The notes beneath the pieces were generated by a model. It did not search any database. It saw nothing but the letters and a program-made list of their open reading frames with translations, and was not told the DNA's origin. A DNA stretch of 64,000 bases, from assembly GCA_950097015.1 (NCBI GenBank), contig CATNEN010000002.1:434001-498000 (forward strand), given 5' to 3'. The stretch comes from Macrostomum hystrix. Taxonomy: Eukaryota > Animalia > Platyhelminthes. The position numbers and the translations under genes are program-made. Positions 48,311 to 61,697 of this stretch are shown in pieces (the stretch's first letter is position 1; every line of letters starts with the position of its first letter).

Positions 48311-51300
48311 ATGTCCACCGACGAAAGGTCTCTCGTCGATGAATTGTCTGGAGCCATGCATCGAGCGGGATTCAATTCAACAAATGCCAGAGTTCAGTCT
48401 GCGATGAGTGACGTATTCGGTGACTCCTTAAAGTGCATATTGAACATGGAAGAGCTGCATGTGTTCGGCAGCTTCTCGGAAGGATGGGGCAGTTGCTTGA
48501 GTCAGCTGGATGGGAGCATCGAAGAAGGCAGCGATATTGACATCACGGTGATTACTGACGTAAAGCCAACTCACCTTTGTGACGAATCCATGAGCGCTAG
48601 CGACTGCGCGTCCGAGCACACGTGCGCCCGACTAGCGGACGGTCACGTGCAGTTTCGAACTCAAGGTCTGTACAGAAAACTGCAAACTCAATTGCATTGA
48701 TAAAATGAACTAGTATTAACCATGGCACTGTTAACAAGAAAATTAAAACTACATGGCTTTCAGTGACTATGCCGAACTTCAGCATAGACAGCTCTGGAGT
48801 TCACGGCTTGACATGCGCCTTCGACATCATCCTCGCCTTGCCCTGCTGCGGCTATCCTCCAGTCGCCGTTCTCCAGCCAGACTACAGGAACCGCGTCGGT
48901 CAACCTTCCTGCATGCCTGAGCCCATCATGAAGCTGCTCAGAGACCAGGTGTTCGGAGACTCGCCCAAGTGTCACGCGGTCTCGGCGTCGCCTCCAGGTG
49001 AGGAAGGCGGATACCTGCGAGTGAGCACAACCTTCCTTGAGAGAGTTGTCTTGCGCAACCTCAGCACCGTTCAGGGTCAGTTCTTCATTATTGTCAAGTT
49101 CCTCATCAAGAGGGTGATTAGCAAAGAGGTGAGCGGTCTGAAGACGTACATGGCCAAGAACTTGCTGTTCTACATGCTCGACGAGACTGCAGCAGAAGAG
49201 TGGAAACCGGAGAACTTAGTGGAGCTGACTAGGCGGGCGCTTAAAATGCTTTTGAGTATGATCGAGTTATTGAATCCCAAAGAATCAGAGGACGTGCTCG
49301 TGTGCATGAAGCATTTCTTTCTGCGTGATGCCAACGTGTACTTTAAGAAAATCAAGACGGACAAAAATCTATCTAATCCTCCGAAACCGCAGAGGCGAGA
49401 TATTGTGGCCGCTGTTAGAATGACAGTTCAGAATCTTTCCGCTGAACTAAAAAACTTCAAGAGCCAACTCAGTGAATTCGAAGTAACGACGGTGTCTTTC
49501 TACGCCTTCCACGCTTTTCTTCTCGTCTCAGAGATCTTCCTGGCCAGTTTACAGAATACCGATTTTATGAGCATAATCAGCATGCACAAGGCTGTGGTTA
49601 GCGCGTACAAGACGATCGCAGAAAACCGCAGTCACTCTTCGGCAAGCAACTGTTTGCCATTCCTTCTTAACAAAGTGGCAGAGATTCCTGACAAGGTGCA
49701 AGTCACCAGAGAGTGCCTTAGAGCCATGGCTTATCGGAGAGCTGGAGTGCCTGTGACATCTTTGAACGATAAATTCGGATTTGCCATCAGTAGAGAAATC
49801 GATTGCAGTGCCATTTCGGGAGAAATCTCTCATGAAGACGCAAAGGCAAAAGTGCTGAAAGTACTCGAGGAAACCGATCCGTTCCGGATCCAGCTGCATG
49901 ACGGAAAAATAGTCAGCTGCAACATGAAGAAAGAGTGCGAAGGATTAGCTTCCTGCATGGCCTCTATTAGACGAGGCGAGGTGATTCGAAGCGAGCAACT
50001 CCTACAGTCTGTGATGCTGGTTTCTCCGCTTGTTCCGCTGCTGTTTAGCTATAATGTAAGTTTTATTTGTGTCTTCATATATGAACTGGTAGTCCCTTTA
50101 CTGCAACCAATTTTTATGTCCATTTCCTTTTGTCCATACCATAGACCCTTCTATACTTAAAGACATAAAAAGTCGGTTCCTTTGGGAAGGAGACATCTTG
50201 TTATACAAAGCGTGGCTTAGGATGAACTATTGTGCAAGGGTTTTATGTTACGCCTGCAGTCGCCGTCTGCTTTCGTCAGCAGCGTGATAATCGCAATGGC
50301 CGAATTCATGCTCACAACTTGTCAAAGCGGCAGAGTGATAAAATAAGCGTAGCAGTTTAGCGTAGAGCAATTTTAGACGGTTGTCAACAGAGGTAAGAAT
50401 GAATGGAGCTAATGTCACGCGCCGGCACCGAAAAATACGGTCAAAGCCTTCACTAATTGTCCGACGGCTGGCTGGGTACAGCTATTCTTAGTACAAAAGA
50501 CTTAACAAGCTGTGTGGGGCTGCGTTCCAACCAGAGATGAAGAAATATCTGCATTTTCAGCGCCTACAGAAGCAGGACTTTTAATAATATATCATATATA
50601 GGCTCGAAGGTTTATCTAAACACAATTAAGTATAGAATAATACCCCCCTGATTTCGTTTCTTTGGCCTAGGAACGGCTGAGGACGCGTCTCTTGGCCGAG
50701 GCGAAGCCGAGGCCCAGAAGCGCAGTCCGGAGCCGTTCCTAGGACTTTTTAACCATAGACTGCAAATTGAGCAGCCACTATTTTATATGAAATTCGATTT
50801 GGTTTGGCGCCCATTATATGGTTTAATGGGCCCCGTTTTTGGGACCATTATATGGCACACTGGTTCAAGACTTCGCATTTCCAACGATAGACGATAGATT
50901 CGTGGCTCAGAATGCGCCCATTAAACGTCCATTAACGACGAAATCGGATTTTATATGACTGGCTTAGGCCAGTTAAATAATAAATACGTAGAATAGGCCG
51001 GGCCAAGCTGGGGATTAACAATAAGTGAGCTCTGCAGCTTAACCAGAGGCTATGATTCTATGTCATCTTGAGCATTCATTGGGTGGCGCATTGAATGCAA
51101 GCTATAAGATCACCGGTTTATATTTTCAGTTTTTTGGAATTTCAATATGCAGCTTGATTCCTTATAAATCGAGTTCTCTATGGTCTTAAGTTGTAAGTTT
51201 ACCCCTCAGCCGGTAACTGGAGGAGGTTCCTCATGCAGGAAATGTGGATTCGACGAAAATCCTCATAGTGGGAGTAAAATAAGAACAAAAAACCAATGTC

Positions 51301-51812
51301 TTAATAGTGATTAATGGAGATTCTGAGACACCCCGACAAGAATAGTTGAACATCTCGACGATGACGTTGTTTCATGATCCTAAAAGTTGTTTCATCGGAT
51401 AATGCGAAAAAATCTAGCCCGTCTTCTGGATTTTCATGATGATTGGTTGAATATTTTAGGAGATAGAGAAAAAAGAAAAATGTGGCTATTTGATTATAAC
51501 CCCATAGTCTGTCGATCCTTAAACTACGCTCGTAAAAAAAACTTAACTTTTTAGAGGGTCGAGGAGCCTCGCGCCAGACAGGCTCTGACCCGTCTCACTC
51601 GGCAATTCCGAGCGTTGCTGGCAGGCAGTGAGCAGAATAGCACCGGCGATACCTTTGCCGGTTCCATTGAATCCGCTGATCATCTGGAACTGATTGGCAT
51701 GCTAGTTGAAGAAGAAATTGATGCTGACGATAATGAAACAGCTGATGCCATTTCGAAGACTGATGAGACACAGACGACACCTTCTGGGCTGACCGAAGAT
51801 GATATTGATTGA
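48311..51812 (+). CDS. Mab-21 / cGAS-like receptor (cGLR) nucleotidyltransferase paralog 1; exons 48311-48665, 48764-50055, 51555-51812
   Basis: GSFSEG...SDIDITV (first two catalytic acids), AFDIILAL (third Asp), YLRVSTTFLERVVL, LKTYMAKNLLFYML...W, CMKHFFLRDANVY (Mab-21 C-lobe). Junctions G|gtctgt..tttcag|TG and AAT|gtaagt..ttttag|AGG are in frame and at the same positions as in paralog 2. Confidence 0.85.
50666..50743. repeat. 78-nt symmetric hairpin capped by GGCGAAGCC in cGLR1 intron 2
   Basis: cctaggaacggct (50666-50678) / agccgttcctagg (50731-50743) perfect outer stem; inner ggac/gtcc and ggcc/ggcc pairs; centre at 50704. Confidence 0.8.
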
Positions 51813-52004
51813 CAATATGAAACCGAAAGAGCATGCCGTTTAAAATTGATAAAATTTGAGATTCTTCCAACTCATCGCTGTCATTTAGATTTGCAGTTTC
51901 AAGTATTCATGTAAAATGCAGTTTGTTGCACCTTAAATTCCTCAAATTTCTACCCTTTTCTCATGCAAAAATTGACTGATTCGCAAATACGCTAAATTTG
52001 CGAA

Positions 52005-52476
52005 GTCACTCTGTTCCTTGGTCACTCTGTTCCTTGGTCACTCTGTTCCTTGGTCATTCTGTTCCTTGGTCATTCTGTTCCTTGGTCACTCTGTTCCTTG
52101 GTCACTCTGTTCCTTGGTCACTCTGTCCCTTGGTCACTCTGTCCCTTGGTCACTCTGTTCCTTGGTCACTCAGTTCCTTGGTCACTCTGTTCCTTGGTCA
52201 CTCTGTTCCTTGGTCACTCTGTTCCTTGGTCACTCTGTTCCTTGGTCACTCTGTTCCTTGGTCACTCTGTTCCTTGGTCACTCTGTTCCTTGGTCACTCT
52301 GTTCCTTGGTCACTCTGTTCCTTGGTCACTCTGTTCCTTGGTCACTCTGTTCCTTGGTCACTCTGTTCCTTGGTCACTCTGTTCCTTGGTCACTCTGTTC
52401 CTTGGTCACTCTGTTCCTTGGTCACTCTGTTCCTTGGTCACTCTGTTCCTTGGTCACTCTGTTCCTTGGTCACTCT
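52005..52476. repeat. 16-bp minisatellite (gtcactctgttccttg), about 29.5 copies
   Basis: Near-perfect head-to-tail array; a few variants in the first third. Confidence 0.97.
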
Positions 52477-52551
52477 TCCGTTTTCATGTACTCGTAGATA
52501 TACATTATTCATTACCTGTGAGATAAAAACTGACTTAGCTACTTTTAGTAG

Positions 52552-52706
52552 TGTTGTGCAGTTGATTAATGCACGTACATAGTTCGTACATGTACACCTC
52601 TGATATCGATTGGCGCAGAATATATATAGTCCAAATACGGAGAGCCAACTTGGCGTGAAAGTTTCGGATACTAACTTGGCTGACTCGCTACTATTCATTT
52701 ACAACA
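52552..52706 (+). repeat. 5' LTR (155 bp)
   Basis: tgttgtgcag...tttacaaca; terminal inverted tgttgt/acaaca; TATA-like tatatatag near 52621. Confidence 0.97.
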
Positions 52707-52707
52707 T

Positions 52708-52725
52708 TGGCATCGCAAGCTCAAG
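52708..52725 (+). promoter_or_regulatory. Putative primer-binding site
   Basis: tggcatcgcaagctc starts 1 nt after the 5' LTR; TGG complements the tRNA CCA end; priming tRNA not identified. Confidence 0.6.
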
Positions 52726-52837
52726 CGAACACCCACCCCAATAAGCCGGGGTCGGAGTAGACTGAAGTGAAGTGACTGCAAGCCTGCCAAGCCAAGCGTA
52801 AACAACAGCGCCAAACTGCAAAAGTGCAAACTGAAAC

Positions 52838-55800
52838 ATGACGAGTGACAGCAACTCAGCAGAAGCGCCGCGGATCAGCGTATCGCCGCCGGATCAATTC
52901 CTGCCGCAGCCGGGCCGACCGGCGAGGCCGTGGAAAGAGTGGAAGGCCCTCTTTGAGAACTACTTACTTGCGGCCGGCTGCGACACTTTGCCGGAAGCGA
53001 GGAGGCGCGCGCTGTTGCTGCACTGCCTTGGCGTGGAAGGGCAGCGAGTCTTTGCGGCTGTGGCAGCAACGAAGAGGCCGAGTCCGACAGAACTCGCGGC
53101 GACAGTCGCGATTCTGGACGAGCAGTTCGGAGCCAAAGTCAACGTGGTGGCGGAGCGCCACAAGTTTCGGCAGCGCAGTCAGCGTCCGGGTGAAAAGATT
53201 GCGGACTTCGTGGCGGCTCTGTATGCTCTGGCTGGCTCATGTGAGTTCCGCGACATGATGGAAGAAATGATCCGCGACCAGATCGTGGAGAAGGTCAGCG
53301 ACAGGCGAATTCGAGAGCGCTTGCTGATCGAGGACGGCCTGACGCTGCAGAAGGCAGTGACGCTGAGCCAGCAATGAGAGACCAGCATCGCTGAGGCCAG
53401 CGCGATAGAGACGGAAGGCGCAGCCGCGGCCGGAGCACAGCTGGAAGAAGAGGTGAAGAGAGTCCGACTACAACCAGACAGGAAGAACACAGGACAAGGG
53501 CGACCAGATCGAGAGTCATGCTCCAAGTGCGGAGGCGGGCACAACAGACGAGCCCGGTGTCCAGCTGAAGGCAAGAGATGTCATGTCTGCGGGAAGGCGA
53601 ACCATTTCGGCCGGATGTGCAGGTCGCAGGGCGCCAAGGTCGCCGAGGTCATGGACGAGAGCGGCCAAGCCGTGTACATGGTGCGCGGCGCCGCCAGTCC
53701 CGACATCCGCTGCCGGCTGAATGTGCATGGCATCTGGCTGAATCTGCTTGTAGACTCGGGAGCCAAGGTGTCCATCCTGTCAGAGAGGACCTTCAGGAAG
53801 CTCGGAAACCGGTCGCCACTCCAGCCGTCGACCAAGAAACTCATCGCGTACAACGGCAAGGCAATCGATGTCGTCGGCGAGGCGGTGCTGTCCGTCAGCT
53901 ATCGCGGCCAGCTGGTGCCATTTTTCTGCTTTACCGTGGTACGGCAAGGCTCCGACATCATGGGAACGGATCTGATGCAGCACCTCAGCTTCCAGGTGGT
54001 GGACAAGGACGGCGACCTCGTGCGCACAGTCGAAAAAACGGCAGAGCTACCGGTCTGGCTGGCCGAGCGCTTCAAGCCACTGACGCAGGGACTCGGGCGG
54101 ATCCGAGGATTCGAGCACCGGCCCAGGCTGAACCCCGCCGTGCCCCCGGTGGCGCAATCGCTTCGCCGCATCCCACTTAGCATCAAAGACAAAGTCCAGG
54201 CGGAGATTGACCAGCTGCTGGAGGATGACATCATCGAGGAGATCCAGGCTTCAGAGTGGATTTCGAACCTGGTGATCGTCCCGAAGCCTGATGGCAAAAT
54301 CAGGGTCTGCAATGACCTCAGGTGCCCAAACAAGGCCATAGTTCAGGATAAGCAGCCGCTGCCGACATTCGAGGAGCTGACAACGGAGTTCAAGGGCTCG
54401 ACCGTGTTCACTAAGCTGGATTTAAATTCTTCGTATCTGCAGTTGGAGCTAGCAGAAGATAGGCGGGACTTAACGGCCTTCATTACGGAGAAAGGGCTGT
54501 ACCGGTACAAGCGCGCATGCTATGGCCTAAACAGCGCCCCGGCGGCCTTCCAGAAAGTTCTCAGCAAGATTCTCCATGGCTGTTCCGGGACGCTGCACTA
54601 CATCGACGACATAGTGGTGCACGCTGCCAACGAGGCGGAGCACCTGCGGCGGCTCACGACAGTGCTGGACAAGCTACTCGCCCATGGCGTCACGCTCAAC
54701 GCCTCAAAGTGCCAGTGGGCTGCAGAGACAGTGCAGTTCCTGGGCTACATCGTCTCCGCGAGAGGACTTCAGCCGATGCAGTCTAACGTTGAAGACATCG
54801 AGGCGGTGCCGGAGCCCCAGAACGCCGAGGCAGTGGCCTCATTTCTGGGAATGGTTAAATTCTATTCCAACTTTCTGCACAACTTGTCCGACATCGCCGA
54901 GCCGCTGCTGCTGCTACTTCGCAAAGAGCAGCCCTGGAACTGGACAACAGATTGCCAAAAGGCTTTTTGGAGGCTCAAGAAGATGGTGGTGTCCCCAACA
55001 TGCTTGCGATTCTTCAGTCCCGACGACAAGATCATCGTGGCCTGCGACAGCTCCGCGCACGCTCTGGGGGCCGTGCTGATGCAAGACGACAGCGCCGGGG
55101 TTCGAAGACCAGTTGCTTTCGCGTCAAGGACCCTGTCAGCGACCGAGCGCAAGTACTCCGCATCAGAGAGAGAGGCTCTCGCGTGCATCTTCGCGTGCGA
55201 GAGATGGCACTATTTCCTGTTCGGCCGGAGATTCGAGCTGCACACGGACCACCAGGCTCTGACGACGCTGCTGACGGCTCAAGGCAGCGGCCACCGGCCT
55301 CTGCGGCTTCATCGATGGGCCGACCGCCTGCTCGCGTACGACTTCCAAGTCTGCCACGTTCCTGGCAAGAAGAACATCGTGCCAGATTTTTTGTCGCGCC
55401 ACGGCGCTCTCGGAGCAAAATGTCCAAGGCAAAGCGAAGAGGACTCGACCGAGCTCAAAGTGAATGCCGTACTGCTGTCGGGCGCGCTGGAGATTGTCAG
55501 TCCAAGCGAACTGGCCGAGGCATCCCTGCAGGACCCGGTGATCAATGATGCGGTCACAATGACGCTCCAGGGGTGGCCTAACTCCATCAAGCAGCTGAAG
55601 CCGGAGCTACAGCCGTTCTGGAGGATGCGGACGCAACTGGCGCTCTGGAATGACGGCAAGTGCCTGGCCAACGGCACCCGAGCAGTAATCCCCGCATCCC
55701 TGAGGGAGAAGACGCTGCAGCTGGCGCATTTCGGGCACCTCGGCGTGAGCAAAATGAAGCAGCATTGCCGGGACGCAGTCTGGTGGCCGCAAGTCGATCA

Positions 55801-56836
55801 GCATATCGAGGAATTTGTGCGACATTGCCTGCCTGCCTGCCTGCTTAGCGAGAAGAACTTTAAGCCACCCAAGACGGTCCTGACGCCTACGAAGTGGCCG
55901 ACGCGTCCATGGGAGGAACTCCAGCTCGACATCTTCGGGGAGCTGCACTCTGCACCGAACTCCTGTCGCTTCATCCTGGTGCTGTACGATTTGCATTCAA
56001 AGTGGCCGGAGGCTGCCTGCATGTCGACTGTCACAAGCGCGGATGTCATCGACGCCCTGACAACGTGGTTTAGCCGCTGGGGCCTGCCGAAGAGCATTAA
56101 AACAGACGGAGGTCCGCAGTTCGTGTCCGGCGATTTCGAGGATTTTCTTCAGCGCTGCGGCATCCGGCACCGGCAGTCACCGCACTACCACCCCCAGGGC
56201 AACGCGGCCGTAGAGCGCTTCAACCGTTTTCTCAAGGACGGCCTAAAGACGCACCTAGAGGAGGGCTACGACTTCAAGGACGCGGTGAAGACGCTGCTGT
56301 GGTCGTACAGGGCCACCCCACATGCACTGACTGGAGTGTCACCGGCGGAGCTCATGACAGGCCGGAAGATCAGCACCCCGTTGACAGCTCTGCAGCCAAG
56401 GACAACAGCGCGGCACAGACTGGCGGCCAGCATCAAGCGGAGGCAGCAGCGCGTTTTCGATCAGCTCAACACGACCCGGAGGCCGCCGCCCACGTTCATA
56501 GTCGGCGACTGGGTGCGCGTGAAGCGGCCGTTCGCCCGCGGCAAGCTGAGCAGCCGCCTGTCCGAGCCACGGCAGATCTCCCGGATTGCGAGCGCGACCA
56601 CCGTCATCCTCAGCGATGGCTCCCGCTGGCACGTCGACAACTGCGTCCGGGTACCGCGGCCAGCCGGAGCGCTGCCGCACTGGCCAGCGCCGGCTCCCAG
56701 CGCAGCCGGGACAGCCGCGGAGGCGGCGACGACGGCAGACCCAGCGAGACAGCAGCAGCCAGCCCAGACAGCGATCCGAGTGAGCTCAAGGCCGCGAGCG
56801 CCGCCGCAATGGTACGGTGAAATCGTGACTCACTGA
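52838..56836 (+). CDS. gag-pol polyprotein in one frame, interrupted by a single TGA (53375-53377)
   Basis: Gag (WKEWKALFENY..LLLHCLG), knuckles CSKCGGGHNRRARC and CHVCGKANHFGRMC, protease LLVDSGA, RT YIDDIVV, RNase H ACDSS..SEREAL..TDHQAL, integrase HFGH..C..C and D..D..E (LDIF, KTDGG, AVERFN). ORFs 52838 and 53453 share a frame. Confidence 0.92.
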
Positions 56837-57004
56837 CTCGTTTATTAAGGACGGTTATTCAGCTGTTATTAGCGATCAGCTGTTTCGATTTAATTCTCTT
56901 TGAAGTACCTGTTGCATAAAAAGATCATTTTACTCCTTCGATGCTTGGTAATGCACTTTTATTTCCTGCTCAATATTTGCATAATTATTTTCGTTGCTCT
57001 ATCC

Positions 57005-57022
57005 TTTGAAAGGGAAGGTGAA
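57005..57022 (+). promoter_or_regulatory. Polypurine tract
   Basis: tttgaaagggaaggtgaa immediately before the 3' LTR. Confidence 0.8.
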
Positions 57023-57177
57023 TGTTGTGCAGTTGATTAATGCACGTACATAGTTCGTACATGTACACCTCTGATATCGATTGGCGCAGAATATATATAG
57101 TCCAAATACGGAGAGCCAACTTGGCGTGAAAGTTTCGGATACTAACTTGGCTGACTCGCTACTATTCATTTACAACA
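57023..57177 (+). repeat. 3' LTR (155 bp)
   Basis: No mismatch to the 5' LTR on manual comparison. Confidence 0.97.
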
Positions 57178-57261
57178 AGTAGTTTACAGACATTTTATAT
57201 CGTGTAGCTTAGCTTTACTCGGCTAACTTACCCCTGTGTAGGTTTTATCGGTGTATAATTC

Positions 57262-57557
57262 GTATAGCGGTCTAACGCGTTTGCCTCTGGCACCAAGGTC
57301 CCTGAGCTCGATTTCGCGGCGAGGCCCCATTAATTTGTGGTGCAGAAGGCTTGTCGCGCAATTCACGTCCTTTTGGGCCAACCTCCAAGGCACAGTACAC
57401 TGCATCACAATGATGAAGTCAGGGCAGATGTACACACCTGTGTGCTCAGGAGTCAGCGAAATGGGCAGAATTGCCTCCTCGCTGGCCGCAGGTCTAGTGT
57501 CACCAAATGATGTGCCACTGGCCGTAGCCCTCCTGCAAGTTATTGTCATTATTAGTA
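57262..57557 (+). mobile_element. SINE family A copy
   Basis: gcaccaaggtccctgagctcgatt, ctccaaggcacagt, gaagtcagggcagatgtacacacctgtgtg, gtgtcaccaaatgatgtgccactg shared with 43528-43830. Confidence 0.75.
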
Positions 57558-57817
57558 AGTTAACTGGCTTTCCCCAATCAGAATAGGCTGATTAACTTCC
57601 CTCAGATGAAGAAGATTAGCTTTCCTGTGGATGAGTAGATTGCAGCGTTCTTTCCAAATCGATACTAAGTTTTGCAGGAGTTTTCTTTCAGTAGGAAGTT
57701 TTGGTCCCTGAATTTCCGTCAACAGTCTGTAACTATTGGCAACAAGCGACAAAAAAGTAAAATTTGGCTTTATTTGACAAAATTTCTTTAAATCCCGATG
57801 TTTTAGCCGCTGAACAG

Positions 57818-58416
57818 TATCTAAACGGTTACTGTGTATCTAACAGGTTCCTGTGTATCTAACAGGTTCCTGTGTATCTAACAGGTTCCTGTGTATCTAA
57901 CAGGTTCCTTTGTATCTAACAGGTTACTGTGTATCTAACAGGTTCCTGTGTATCTAACAGGTTCCTTTGTATCTAACAGGTTCCTGTGTATCTAACAGGT
58001 TCCTGTGTATCTAACAGGTTCCAGTGTATCTAAAAGGTTCCTGTGTATCTAACAGGTTCCTGTGTATCTAAAAGGTTCCTGTGTATCTAAAAGGTTCCAG
58101 TGTATCTAAAAGGTTCCTGTGTATCTAACAGGTTCCTGTGTATCTAAAAGGTTCCTGTGTATCTAAAAGGTTCCTGTGTATCTAAAAGGTTCCTGTGTAT
58201 CTAACAGGTTCCTGTGTATCTAAAAGGTTCCTGTGTATCTAACAGGTTCCTGTGTATCTAACAGGTTCCTGTGTATCTAATCGGTTCATGAATATCTAAC
58301 AGATTCCTGTGTATCTAACAGGTTCCTGTGTATCTAACAGGTTCCTGTGTATCTAAAAGGTTCCTGTATATCTAACAGGTTCCTGTTTATCTAACAGGTT
58401 CCTGTTTATCTAACAG
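57818..58416. repeat. 19-bp minisatellite (ctgtgtatctaacaggttc), about 31 copies
   Basis: Head-to-tail array; taac/taaa variants cluster in the middle. Confidence 0.96.
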
Positions 58417-59661
58417 TAAAAAACGCAGCCAAAATTCCACTGGAAGGTTGCGGCAGCGAATCGCAGGCCTTCCGCGCCTTGGCAACAGCAGCAAGTGCAT
58501 CGCTGGGCAGCTTCCTCGAATTCTAGTCTGCCCTATCGAACAGCCACCTGCCTGTCGATGAGAGGCGGGCTTTGGCGACCAGAAAACCTCAGCGAATGCG
58601 TCGATCTGACCAACCTGCTGATTTCGGAGCTCAACCTGTGAGCACCTTCGAGCTCAAATCCTGTCGAGTCGATGATCTAATTAGCTCATTCACATTCAGC
58701 TGGCTTGTCTTCCATCTCACCCTCCTGTCACCCTCCTTCCTCAAATTTCTACCCTTTTCTCATGCAAAAATTGGCTGATTCGGAAATAGACGAAATGTAC
58801 TTTCTTATAGCAGCTGGAACGCCAAAAACAAAAAAAGATTTTTCAAAATCAATTTTATGTTCTACCATGCACTATCATAAGTCTACAGTAAAAATATCAC
58901 TTAATCCTACATTCTATGTATTGATTGATTAGTCTTTGAATCAAATGCGGTCGGTTTTACAACGGTTTCTCGACGTCATACGACGCCATAGAATCTCGAC
59001 GTGACTCATACCAGCCAATCAGATAGCTCGGATTTGGCTGGCATAGAGGGGTCCAAAATGGCTATAAAGACGAGACACTGGTGCACTATAAAAGTCAATT
59101 ACCTAAAGTTTTCTACGAGTGTATGAGCTGAAAACGAAAAACTTTTTATTTTTGTTTTCGCTAAAACGTCACAAAATTTACAATAATACATACTTACTTT
59201 CGGAAAGTATTAAGGGCTAGTGTCGCAATACATTTGTTGCTAAGTCTTAGAGTACAATAGTACCTGACACGTCCTGAGAATTCTCTCAGGATTTAGTTAC
59301 GTATTTCTTGGCCCATCCTGAGTTACAAAAATGAAATATCACACAACCGCTACTCTGAAACGCGCAACCATATAGCACAAGTGCACAAGTCCAGCTTGTG
59401 ACAAACCTAAGAGAAGGAAAATTTCGCCATTTTCACAAGTAAAGCTGTGCAAATGTTCACGAGACTTTCAAGCAGAGAGTAATCTTTGCAAGGTAGTAAA
59501 GCGCAACTGTTGAGTTAAGCGCAACCACAGCACAGCTCCGATTTTTATAAAATTGCGGCTATAAAGTCTTTTTTGAATCGGAAAAGGTATATCAGCAATT
59601 GTGACATCATCTATAAACTCGTATAACTAGTTTGTGGCAGCCACGAGACAAGTTTCAAGAA

Positions 59662-61633
59662 ATGAGCAGCGAAGAGGCACTGAGCATGAAGCTGTCTGAA
59701 AAGATGCAGCGTGTTGGATTCAACTCGCGCAATGCCAGGGTTCAATCAGCCATCGCTGACACGTTGTTCGATATTTTTAGATTCCTTTTCAAGCTGGAAG
59801 ATCTGCATATGTTTGGCAGCTTCTCTGATGGCTGGGGCAGCTGCTTGACTAAACTGGATGGTAGCGTGGAAGATGGCAGCGATATTGACGCCACTGTCAT
59901 CTTCTCTGACCTGGATGTGGTACACCTATGTACTGCGTCTATGACAAACATTACCTGCAGCGCGCCAGGTAATACGTTTTCTGACTACAGAGATGGTCAT
60001 ATCAGGTCTCCAATCAAGGGTTAGTTTAATTGATAGTTAATATCACGTTTTTTTCATCCAACTTTGATATTTTAATGTTAATACTGATCAAGTAAAAATG
60101 TTAATTTTTAGCGAACGCGCCAAACTTATGCTTTCCTAAGCCGAAGAACAACACGATCTGCGCCTTCGACCTGATATTCGCCCAGCCCTGCTGCGGCTAT
60201 CCTCCAGTCGCCGTTCTCCAGCCAGACTACAGGAACCGCGTCGGTCAACCTTCCTGCATGCCTGAGCCCATCATGAAGCTGCTCAGAGACCAGGTGTTCG
60301 GAGACTCGCCCAAGTGTCACGCGGTCTCGGCGTCGCCTCCAGGTGAGGAAGGCGGATACCTGCGAGTGAGCACAACCTTCCTTGAGAGAGTTGTCTTGCG
60401 CAACCTTAACACCGTTCAGGGTCAGTTCTTCATTATTGTCAAGTTCCTCATCAAGAGGGTGATTAGCAAAGAGGTGAGCGGTCTGAAATCGTACATGGCC
60501 AAGAACTTGCTGTTCTACATGCTCGACGAGACTGCAGCAGAAGAGTGGAAACCGCAAAACCTGCTCCGCCTTGTGCGGAAGTCGCTGAATATGCTAGCAG
60601 ATATGATGGAAAGCTCTGACGCTAACGACGTCTGCATGAAGCACTTCTTTCTTAGAGACGCAAATGTTTATTTAAAGAAGCAAAAATTAAACACAGATTA
60701 TTATATACCCAAAGGTGCAATAATCGCCGTTGTGAAGAAAACGGTTGAACAACTCACCGTCCACGTGCGTAGCTATCTAGACATAATTCCAGGACCCGAA
60801 GTAAGCGTTGTCCACTTCCACGTATTTTATATCTTTCTGGTTTACGTAGAAATTCTTGAATCAGCCGGTGACAAGCACATCTCGATTCTCCAAGGCCTAT
60901 TCGAATTGGTTGCGAGTGTTAAGATCTCCATTGAAGACTTTCACAGCTCATCCGAGAACTCGCGTCTCGAATTTATTCTCAAGAGAGTGGCGGAGATTCC
61001 AGAAACATTGCCAGCCACCAAAGAGCACCTCAAGGTGATGGCCTACCAGAGAGTTGGAATACCTTTCTCTGATTCAGGCAACAATTTGGAATATTCCTTC
61101 AACAGAGGCATCGACTGCAATTTCATTTCCGATGAAACAACTCACGAGGAAATAAAGTCACTGGTGCTGATGACATTGTCAGAGGTCAACGCCTTCGGAA
61201 TCGTTGCTTCAGGAGAAAAAATAATCAGCTGCAAATTCGAGGACATGATCGGAGGCCTTCTTTCATACTTCACTAATATTCGGCGCGGTGTCATTCCTAG
61301 GAGCGATCTTCTGCTTCAAGCGATATCTAGAATCTCGCCGATAGTTTCTGAGCTGCATGAGTGCGATGTGAGTTCAATTCTGGTTGAAATGCTGCTTGAA
61401 ATTTCACGAACTTTGATTAGCTTACATGACTGAACCCCAAAATGTGTGCTTTTCTTTTCAAGAAGCTGCAAATGTTGCGCACCAGAGCCAATCTGATCCG
61501 GATGATGGGTCAGATACGCAGGTCGCTGCCCTTGGCCAGGCGGCCTCGAAATTTAAATTCGACTGGCGAGTCCGATGTCTACAGTCGCCCACCTGGCCTA
61601 GAAACATTGTTGATTGAAGATGATCTGGATTGA
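59662..61633 (+). CDS. Mab-21 / cGAS-like receptor (cGLR) paralog 2; exons 59662-60019, 60112-61367, 61463-61633
   Basis: GSFSDG...SDIDATV, AFDLIFAQ, LKSYMAKNLLFYML, CMKHFFLRDANVY; junctions G|gttagt..ttttag|CG and GAT|gtgagt..tttcaag|AAG in frame; ends EDDLD* like paralog 1 EDDID*. Confidence 0.85.
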
Positions 61634-61697
61634 GTCCGATGTCTACAGTGGCCCACCTGGCCTAGAAACATTGTTGATTGAAGATGATCTGGATTGA
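61568..61697 (+). repeat. 64-bp tandem duplication covering the cGLR2 stop codon
   Basis: gagtccgatgtctacagt(c/g)gcccacctggcctagaaacattgttgattgaagatgatctggatt twice, one mismatch. Confidence 0.95.

Follow-up and report, generated by a model that had tools for sequence, protein, structure and literature searches.

A tandem pair of predicted cGAS-like receptor genes in Macrostomum hystrix belongs to a large flatworm radiation

The usual view is that flatworms have lost cGAS/cGLR-STING immunity. The closest described relatives of the genes analyzed here are nevertheless flatworm proteins: Li et al. 2023 (PMC9980059) listed a Macrostomum clade as cGAS-like receptors (cGLRs), annotated Ank_2 domains on Macrostomum lignano PAA accessions (their Table S2) and had five M. 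lignano constructs (#89-93) in their screen of 140 purified proteins (their Table S3). The main text of that paper does not name Macrostomum, and the only enzymes whose in-depth analysis it cites by number are -03, -07, -08 and -09. We analyzed a 64,000-nucleotide stretch of the Macrostomum hystrix genome (contig CATNEN010000002.1, positions 434,001 to 498,000), called the window below, in which two genes, A and B, of three exons each lie 11 kb apart on the plus strand (Table 1). An earlier note on this DNA had described them as a tandem pair of catalytically intact cGLRs with identical exon structure and as a candidate undescribed signalling module. The pair and its shared exon structure were found as described, at the coordinates given, and the two genes are intact tandem cGLR genes of the Macrostomum clade, whose products are probably ligand-gated makers of a nucleotide second messenger. 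The word undescribed has to be given up. With the clade listed as cGLRs and five M. lignano members cloned, the pair consists of ordinary members of a large flatworm cGLR radiation already catalogued in 2023, and the subfamily is already described and screened. The earlier note was right in knowing of no characterized member, and the text of Li et al. names no product for the five cloned ones.

The catalytic motifs could be read directly in both genes. GS, DxD and the third Asp are intact, the spacer between GS and DxD is exactly 20 residues in A and in B, the third Asp follows DxD at a spacing of 58 residues (A) or 59 residues (B), and the strand that carries it reads A-F-D-(I/L)-I. The cGLR motif given by Li et al. 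(PMC9980059), h[QT]GS-X8-20-[DE]h[DE]h-X50-90-h[DE]h, describes both genes with a single deviation, a Phe in place of Q/T before GS, and with the spacer at its upper limit. The catalogued M. lignano construct #91 shows VFGS too. The long spacing, to which the earlier note had drawn attention at about 20 residues, is real, and in a profile alignment with bivalve Mab-21 proteins it shows as an insertion of 8 residues. A loop pattern, GS-(F/Y)-x-(D/E)-G-W-(G/S/C)-x-x-(L/F)...(D/N/C/S)-G...(S/A)-D-(I/M)-D, recurs with the same spacing in all 22 distinct copies, which are those readable from 20 sampled paralogue loci together with the window pair. Since the long loop is present in all sampled paralogues, it is a clade signature and not a peculiarity of the pair. 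The third residue is acidic in 22 of the 22 copies (Glu in one). M. lignano relatives show the same loop, and nearly all of the ten examined retain GS, DxD and an acidic third residue. The Cys/His segment noted at the end of exon 1 exists as well; conserved across the family are only the His of an xxH(L/I) element and a DGH(V/I) element, while the Cys positions vary, and the segment is the least confident part of the core in the structural model described below.

The family assignment was approached by sequence profiles and by structure. Database searches were run per exon, and the joined coding sequences were used solely for the frame check, identity, dN/dS (the ratio of nonsynonymous to synonymous divergence) and isoelectric point (pI). 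Pfam Mab-21_C was found on the second exons, where it scored 30.7 bits in gene B and 24.1 bits, a value equal to the cutoff, in gene A, and also on all ten M. lignano relatives. An exhaustive profile search collected 306 proteins, 71 of them below an E value of 1e-30; the seven strong matches that were looked up (E 4e-186 to 2e-56) all came from M. lignano. At the next tier (about 1e-10), two of the three proteins looked up were from bivalves and the third was an unnamed Logan protein, and nine of ten scanned proteins carried both PF03281 and PF20266. Alignment of the flatworm family by hhalign with twelve next-tier proteins, among them bivalve proteins with PF03281 and PF20266, gave a probability of 99.7% and E 7.6e-26 over 304 columns, which begin at the N-terminal helix, extend through the whole C-lobe and place GS, DxD and the third Asp in matching columns.

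For the fold, an AlphaFold2 model was made of the M. lignano relative P0002 (PAA57558.1), with the window exons as rows of the alignment. The model reached a predicted local distance difference test score (pLDDT) of 75.6 and a predicted template modelling score (pTM) of 0.81. Its best Foldseek matches were the oyster Cv-cGLR1 (8gjw) and cGAS, with E from 2e-6 to 1e-4. VIA-align gave Z scores of 15.3 to 8gjw and 14.9 to human cGAS (6ct9), with a root mean square deviation of 3.5-3.6 Å over about 260 residues, an alignment covering residues 1-320 of the model and practically all of the cGAS catalytic domain. The top structural matches listed for the model were all cGLR or cGAS and none was OAS. 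The comparison with cGAS that the earlier note had proposed was in this way answered by proxy, with a Mab-21/cGAS fold at Z about 15. Taken with the profile alignments, the model makes the placement of both genes in the cGAS-like family of Mab-21 fold well supported. In the C-terminal part of the P0002 model (about 240 residues) helices predominate; pLDDT is 73-87 for residues 371-470 and falls beyond them. An ESM Atlas search with the C-terminal region of gene B returned no usable match. The overall architecture is a cGAS-type nucleotidyltransferase (NTase) core of about 320 residues and, behind it, a largely helical tail specific to the family, which is about 250-300 residues long and has an acidic end.

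The nearest of the catalogued M. lignano cGLRs #89-93 is construct #91, whose sequence, as far as it is printed, matches P0002; together with a second protein, P0001 (PAA BOX15_Mlig010774g2), it shows 41-45% identity to the pair over exon 2. These relatives share with the pair the GS-x20-DxD loop, Cys-Cys and Cys-His landmarks, the C-terminal region and the acidic end. The window genes differ from them in coming from another species and in having arisen by a tandem duplication specific to their lineage, which carries a conversion tract. The relation to the published cGLR set, also a concern of the earlier note, was followed as far as a quick tree, in which P0002, P0001 and the own-genome paralogue L014 form a small clade with the window pair (SH-aLRT 90-91) and the sister grouping of A and B is partly inflated by the conversion tract. 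The likeness to Cv-cGLR1 and vertebrate cGAS is more distant. As judged from the P0002 model, the bilobed fold over the whole catalytic domain and the catalytic triad are shared (Z 14-15, about 260 residues) at 13-16% identity, but the Macrostomum core is about 40 residues shorter, its activation loop is 8 residues longer, a C-terminal extension of 250-300 residues is present, and the proteins are acidic and not basic. MAB21L1/2 share the Mab-21 fold and Pfam Mab-21_C with the pair and are absent among the 50 best structural matches listed for the P0002 model. In other animals MAB21L1/2 are conserved single-copy genes, in contrast with a radiation of at least 100 copies here.

Exon 1 covers positions 1-105 of the family hidden Markov model (HMM) in gene A (E 1e-34) and 1-101 in gene B (E 2.5e-31). 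Exon 2 covers positions 105-503 in gene A (E 4e-131; 45% identity to P0001) and 107-502 in gene B (E 7e-128; M. lignano matches at 34-50% identity). Exon 3 is the least secure exon in both models, and that of gene B is the weakest of all: the predicted exon of gene A has weak, collinear matches to the last 36 residues of P0001 (532-553, 550-567), and for gene B only the terminal LIEDD(I/L)D agrees with the C-terminus of P0001. All four introns of the two genes are GT-AG. Intron 1 is in phase 1 in both genes (98 bp in A, 92 bp in B) and intron 2 in phase 0 (1502 bp in A, 95 bp in B), each at a homologous position. Directly after the stop codon of gene B, the last 21 codons and the stop are repeated by a 64-bp tandem duplication (61568-61695, 98% identical).

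The window pair is not special within its own genome. A search of the 220-Mb, 42-contig assembly with exon 2 of gene B gave at least 100 paralogue matches from 159 candidates, nearly all of them open frames of 400-600 aa without stops, so that A and B are two of at least 100 paralogues. The close protein relatives of the pair all come from M. lignano, at 34-56% identity. Every one of the 20 sampled loci shows a break in its match to the family HMM at position 104-108, and the phase-1 intron is therefore ancestral. In six of these 20 loci (L017, L021, L022, L024, L026 and L030) ankyrin repeats immediately precede the NTase start, in frame with it within exon 1, and many M. lignano homologues are built likewise (P0011-P0032). 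The ankyrin fusions share with the window genes the NTase core, the motif and the position of the phase-1 intron, but A and B have a stand-alone architecture without ankyrin repeats, their exon-1 frames being stopped a few codons before the ATG. For A and B, an ankyrin exon hidden farther upstream was considered and rejected: the frame of each is closed by a stop just ahead of the ATG, stand-alone M. lignano relatives share the start, and the family HMM finds no other fragment in the window. A radiation of at least 100 copies, some of them fused to ankyrin repeats, fits a diversifying repertoire of immune sensors.

Some individual copies deserve mention. Two family members (L023 and L032, C1:23.58 Mb) form a head-to-head pair on opposite strands within 9 kb. 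Loci L021 and L022 have identical sequence on C33 and C10, and L018 and L020 are very similar copies at two C9 sites; these near-identical copies could be recent duplications or uncollapsed haplotigs. In M. lignano, the 90%-identity cluster of the Mab-21 protein P0018 includes members named for Skp1 or BTB domains (P0161, P0163), which may mean that a BTB/Skp1-like piece is fused to the family in some M. lignano gene models, or that fragments were merged by clustering.

The history of the pair was read from the divergence between its members. The two proteins are 53% identical overall. A tract of 402 bp, which extends over the third-Asp strand and the Mab-21 C-lobe, is 97.0% identical and gap-free, and its flanks are 66-78% identical where alignable. 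Synonymous divergence (dS) is 0.06 within the tract versus 1.7-1.9 (saturated) in the flanks, and dN/dS outside the tract is about 0.26-0.33. The contrast of dS and dN/dS across the tract boundary indicates an old duplication under purifying selection followed by recent gene conversion. Since dN/dS lies well below 1 across saturated dS, both copies have long been under constraint. That one or both copies are recent pseudogenes, unexpressed and still looking intact, is therefore very improbable, and the complete three-exon open frames with canonical splice sites in both genes also speak against it. On its side are the unusually long second intron of gene A (1.5 kb), the result that two word searches of a protein collection returned no transcript-derived protein of M. 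hystrix, and the sequence between the genes, where a young retrotransposon with identical long terminal repeats (LTRs) lies together with two minisatellites. All that these word searches brought up were relatives from M. lignano (34-56% identity) and an unnamed JGI protein (37%).

The element between the genes is a Ty3/gypsy-type LTR retrotransposon (52552-57177). It contains a gag-like open reading frame (52838-53377, with a weak PNMA match) and a pol frame of 1127 aa (53453-56836) with protease, reverse transcriptase, RNase H and integrase. Its LTRs are direct repeats of 155 nt (52552-52706 and 57023-57177), and their 100% identity indicates that the insertion is recent. Minisatellites lie on either side of it, at 51893-52588 (16-bp unit) and 57684-58530 (19-bp unit), with central parts that are 90-98% identical, and a 60-nt sequence at 51938-51997 is repeated at 58737-58796 (92%). 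The minisatellites and the 60-nt repeat suggest that the intergenic spacer may have been part of the original duplication unit.

A receptor for the predicted messenger was sought in the same genome. The search for STING that the earlier note had suggested produced candidates, about 12 paralogous open frames of 300-390 aa in tandem clusters on C2, C7, C38 and C39, with similarity to PF15009 (STING_LBD) that stays below the cutoff. The best match, one open frame at C2:9.10 Mb, reached 25 bits, where the cutoff is 27, and aligned to HMM positions 3-145 (of 182); six of nine members matched PF15009 at sub-threshold scores (up to 25 bits). An N-terminal helix motif, GE-(A/S)-FAW, is conserved in the family. 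With a single STING-like protein as query, all 14 sequence matches in the PDB were STING chains, weak and restricted to the first helix, and with the family profile the best STING match had E 0.0025, beside coiled-coil noise. A word search with a STING-like protein returned no close relative, a hydrophobicity scan found neither a four-helix membrane region nor a transmembrane exon within 1.5 kb of the domain, and Pfam found nothing on the flanking exons. We regard this family as a STING lead and not a finding, at roughly even odds.

How might the two proteins work? In cGAS, ligand binding reorders the activation loop. By analogy with characterized cGLRs, the products of A and B would stay switched off until ligand binding shifts the activation loop that bears GS (8 residues longer, and strictly conserved as GS-x-x-D/E-G-W-G...D-G...S-D-I-D), and the lengthened, conserved loop between GS and DxD, as the counterpart of that loop, is a candidate for the clade's own mode of gating. 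The activated enzymes would then condense nucleoside triphosphates into a nucleotide second messenger, to be read by a downstream receptor, which may be the weak STING-like family of the same genome. The divergent N-terminal region, the C-terminal domain and the ankyrin arrays of the sister copies are candidates for the specificity for ligand or partner. We infer by analogy the labels receptor and cyclic dinucleotide as they are applied to this pair. Both proteins are acidic, with a computed pI of 5.25 for gene A and 6.16 for gene B, and a higher pI is reported for the cGLRs that respond to dsDNA or dsRNA (Li et al., PMC9980059); a trigger other than nucleic acid is therefore plausible.

A binding or scaffolding role has been proposed for MAB21L1/2, and the window proteins could likewise be Mab-21-fold proteins without enzymatic signalling, in which the motif is kept for nucleotide binding or for structure. 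The Phe in place of Q/T before GS and a GS-DxD loop at the extreme of the published range agree with such a role, as does the fact that the text of Li et al. names no product for the screened M. lignano members. The retention of GS, DxD and the third acidic residue in 22 of 22 copies and in nearly all of the ten M. lignano relatives is, however, hard to explain without catalysis, and the best structural matches are active cGLR and cGAS enzymes. A scaffold is consequently unlikely. An alternative that keeps the catalysis is that these are active nucleotidyltransferases outside pathogen sensing, which might have a lineage-specific part in reproduction or self/non-self interaction, or might make a linear, OAS-like oligonucleotide and no cyclic dinucleotide. 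OAS and cGAS share the catalytic triad, the acidic pI speaks against classical binding of dsDNA or dsRNA, and the STING receptor is only a sub-threshold candidate. The structural neighbours, though, are cGLR and cGAS, the Pfam domain specific to OAS (OAS1_C) was not found on either gene at E up to 1, and radiation with fusion to repeat domains is typical of immune sensors, all of which makes this alternative rather improbable. We return to the reading of the pair as ligand-gated cGLR enzymes. An extended form of it would make the clade a distinct cGLR subclass whose lengthened, invariant GS-GWG-DG-SDID activation loop and private C-terminal domain sense a trigger other than nucleic acid, signalling to radiated, divergent and possibly soluble STING-like receptors; we give this form only a small chance. 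If true, such signalling would amount to a full cGLR-STING-type axis, in a phylum to which the loss of this axis is generally attributed.

Several observations weigh against the cGLR enzyme reading and are best considered together. On the side of the sequence, the Phe preceding GS in both genes departs from the published motif, and the Pfam check proposed by the earlier note stood only in part, with Mab-21_C present on both second exons and no match of the NTase-domain model PF03281 to either gene in the Pfam scan. A profile of the ten M. lignano relatives found no PDB sequence at E up to 10. On the side of the structure, the evidence for the fold comes from P0002, a relative that is 41-44% identical to the window proteins. 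On the side of expression, the word searches described above yielded no transcript-derived M. hystrix protein. As to activity, the text of Li et al. (PMC9980059) reports none for any family member, constructs #89-93 being outside the numbers cited there, and the same paper reports that many cGLRs are inactive in vitro, probably for want of the right ligand. On the side of the receptor, the STING-like domain remains below the Pfam cutoff, its AlphaFold2 model (9-row alignment) reaches only pLDDT 39, and an ESM Atlas search with the domain gives only chance-level Roc/Ras leads.

Table 1. Coordinates of the gene pair, its motifs and conversion tract (numbered from the first nucleotide of the window) and of the STING-like loci elsewhere in the genome
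Feature	Residues	Position	Strand	Content
Gene A	633 aa	48311-51812	+	one open frame, single terminal stop
Gene A exon 1		48311-48665	+	start codon, N-terminal helix, GS, 20-residue loop, DxD, Cys/His segment; phase-1 donor GT at 48666
Gene A exon 2		48764-50052	+	third-Asp strand, Mab-21 C-lobe, most of the family-specific C-terminal region; phase-0 donor GTAAGT at 50053
Gene A exon 3		51555-51812	+	predicted acidic tail, end TEDDID and stop; in frame with exon 2; acceptor AG 51553-51554
Gene A GS	53	48467-48472	+
Gene A DxD (D-I-D)	75-77	48533-48541	+
Gene A third Asp	139	48823-48825	+	GAC
Conversion tract, gene A copy		48814-49215	+	third-Asp strand through Mab-21 C-lobe
Gene B	594 aa	59662-61633	+	one open frame, single terminal stop
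Gene B exon 1		59662-60019	+	start codon, GS, 20-residue loop, DxD; phase-1 donor GT at 60020
Gene B exon 2		60112-61367	+	third Asp, Mab-21 C-lobe, C-terminal region; phase-0 donor GTGAGT at 61368
Gene B exon 3		61463-61633	+	predicted tail, end LIEDDLD and stop; in frame
Gene B GS	52	59815-59820	+
Gene B DxD (D-I-D)	74-76	59881-59889	+
Gene B third Asp	139	60168-60170	+	GAC
Conversion tract, gene B copy		60159-60560	+	third-Asp strand through Mab-21 C-lobe
STING-like loci		C2:8.97-9.10 Mb; C39:4.23-4.25 and 19.16 Mb; C38:7.50 Mb; C7:13.14 Mb		L002-L010 on C2; L011-L013 on C39

The pair alone adds little to what the catalogue of 2023 already holds. What it does offer is clean gene models for stand-alone proteins that are compact (about 600 aa), lack ankyrin repeats and share a subclade with one that the Kranzusch laboratory has cloned; such models would be convenient for biochemistry on the ligand and product of the clade. 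The homogenization of the catalytic core by conversion, while the N- and C-terminal regions diverge, points to those regions as determinants of specificity. The STING-like family, if confirmed, would be more interesting than the pair itself. For the phylum, the free-living Macrostomum lineage is the exception to the loss of cGAS/cGLR-STING immunity usually ascribed to flatworms, with a very large private radiation of its own.

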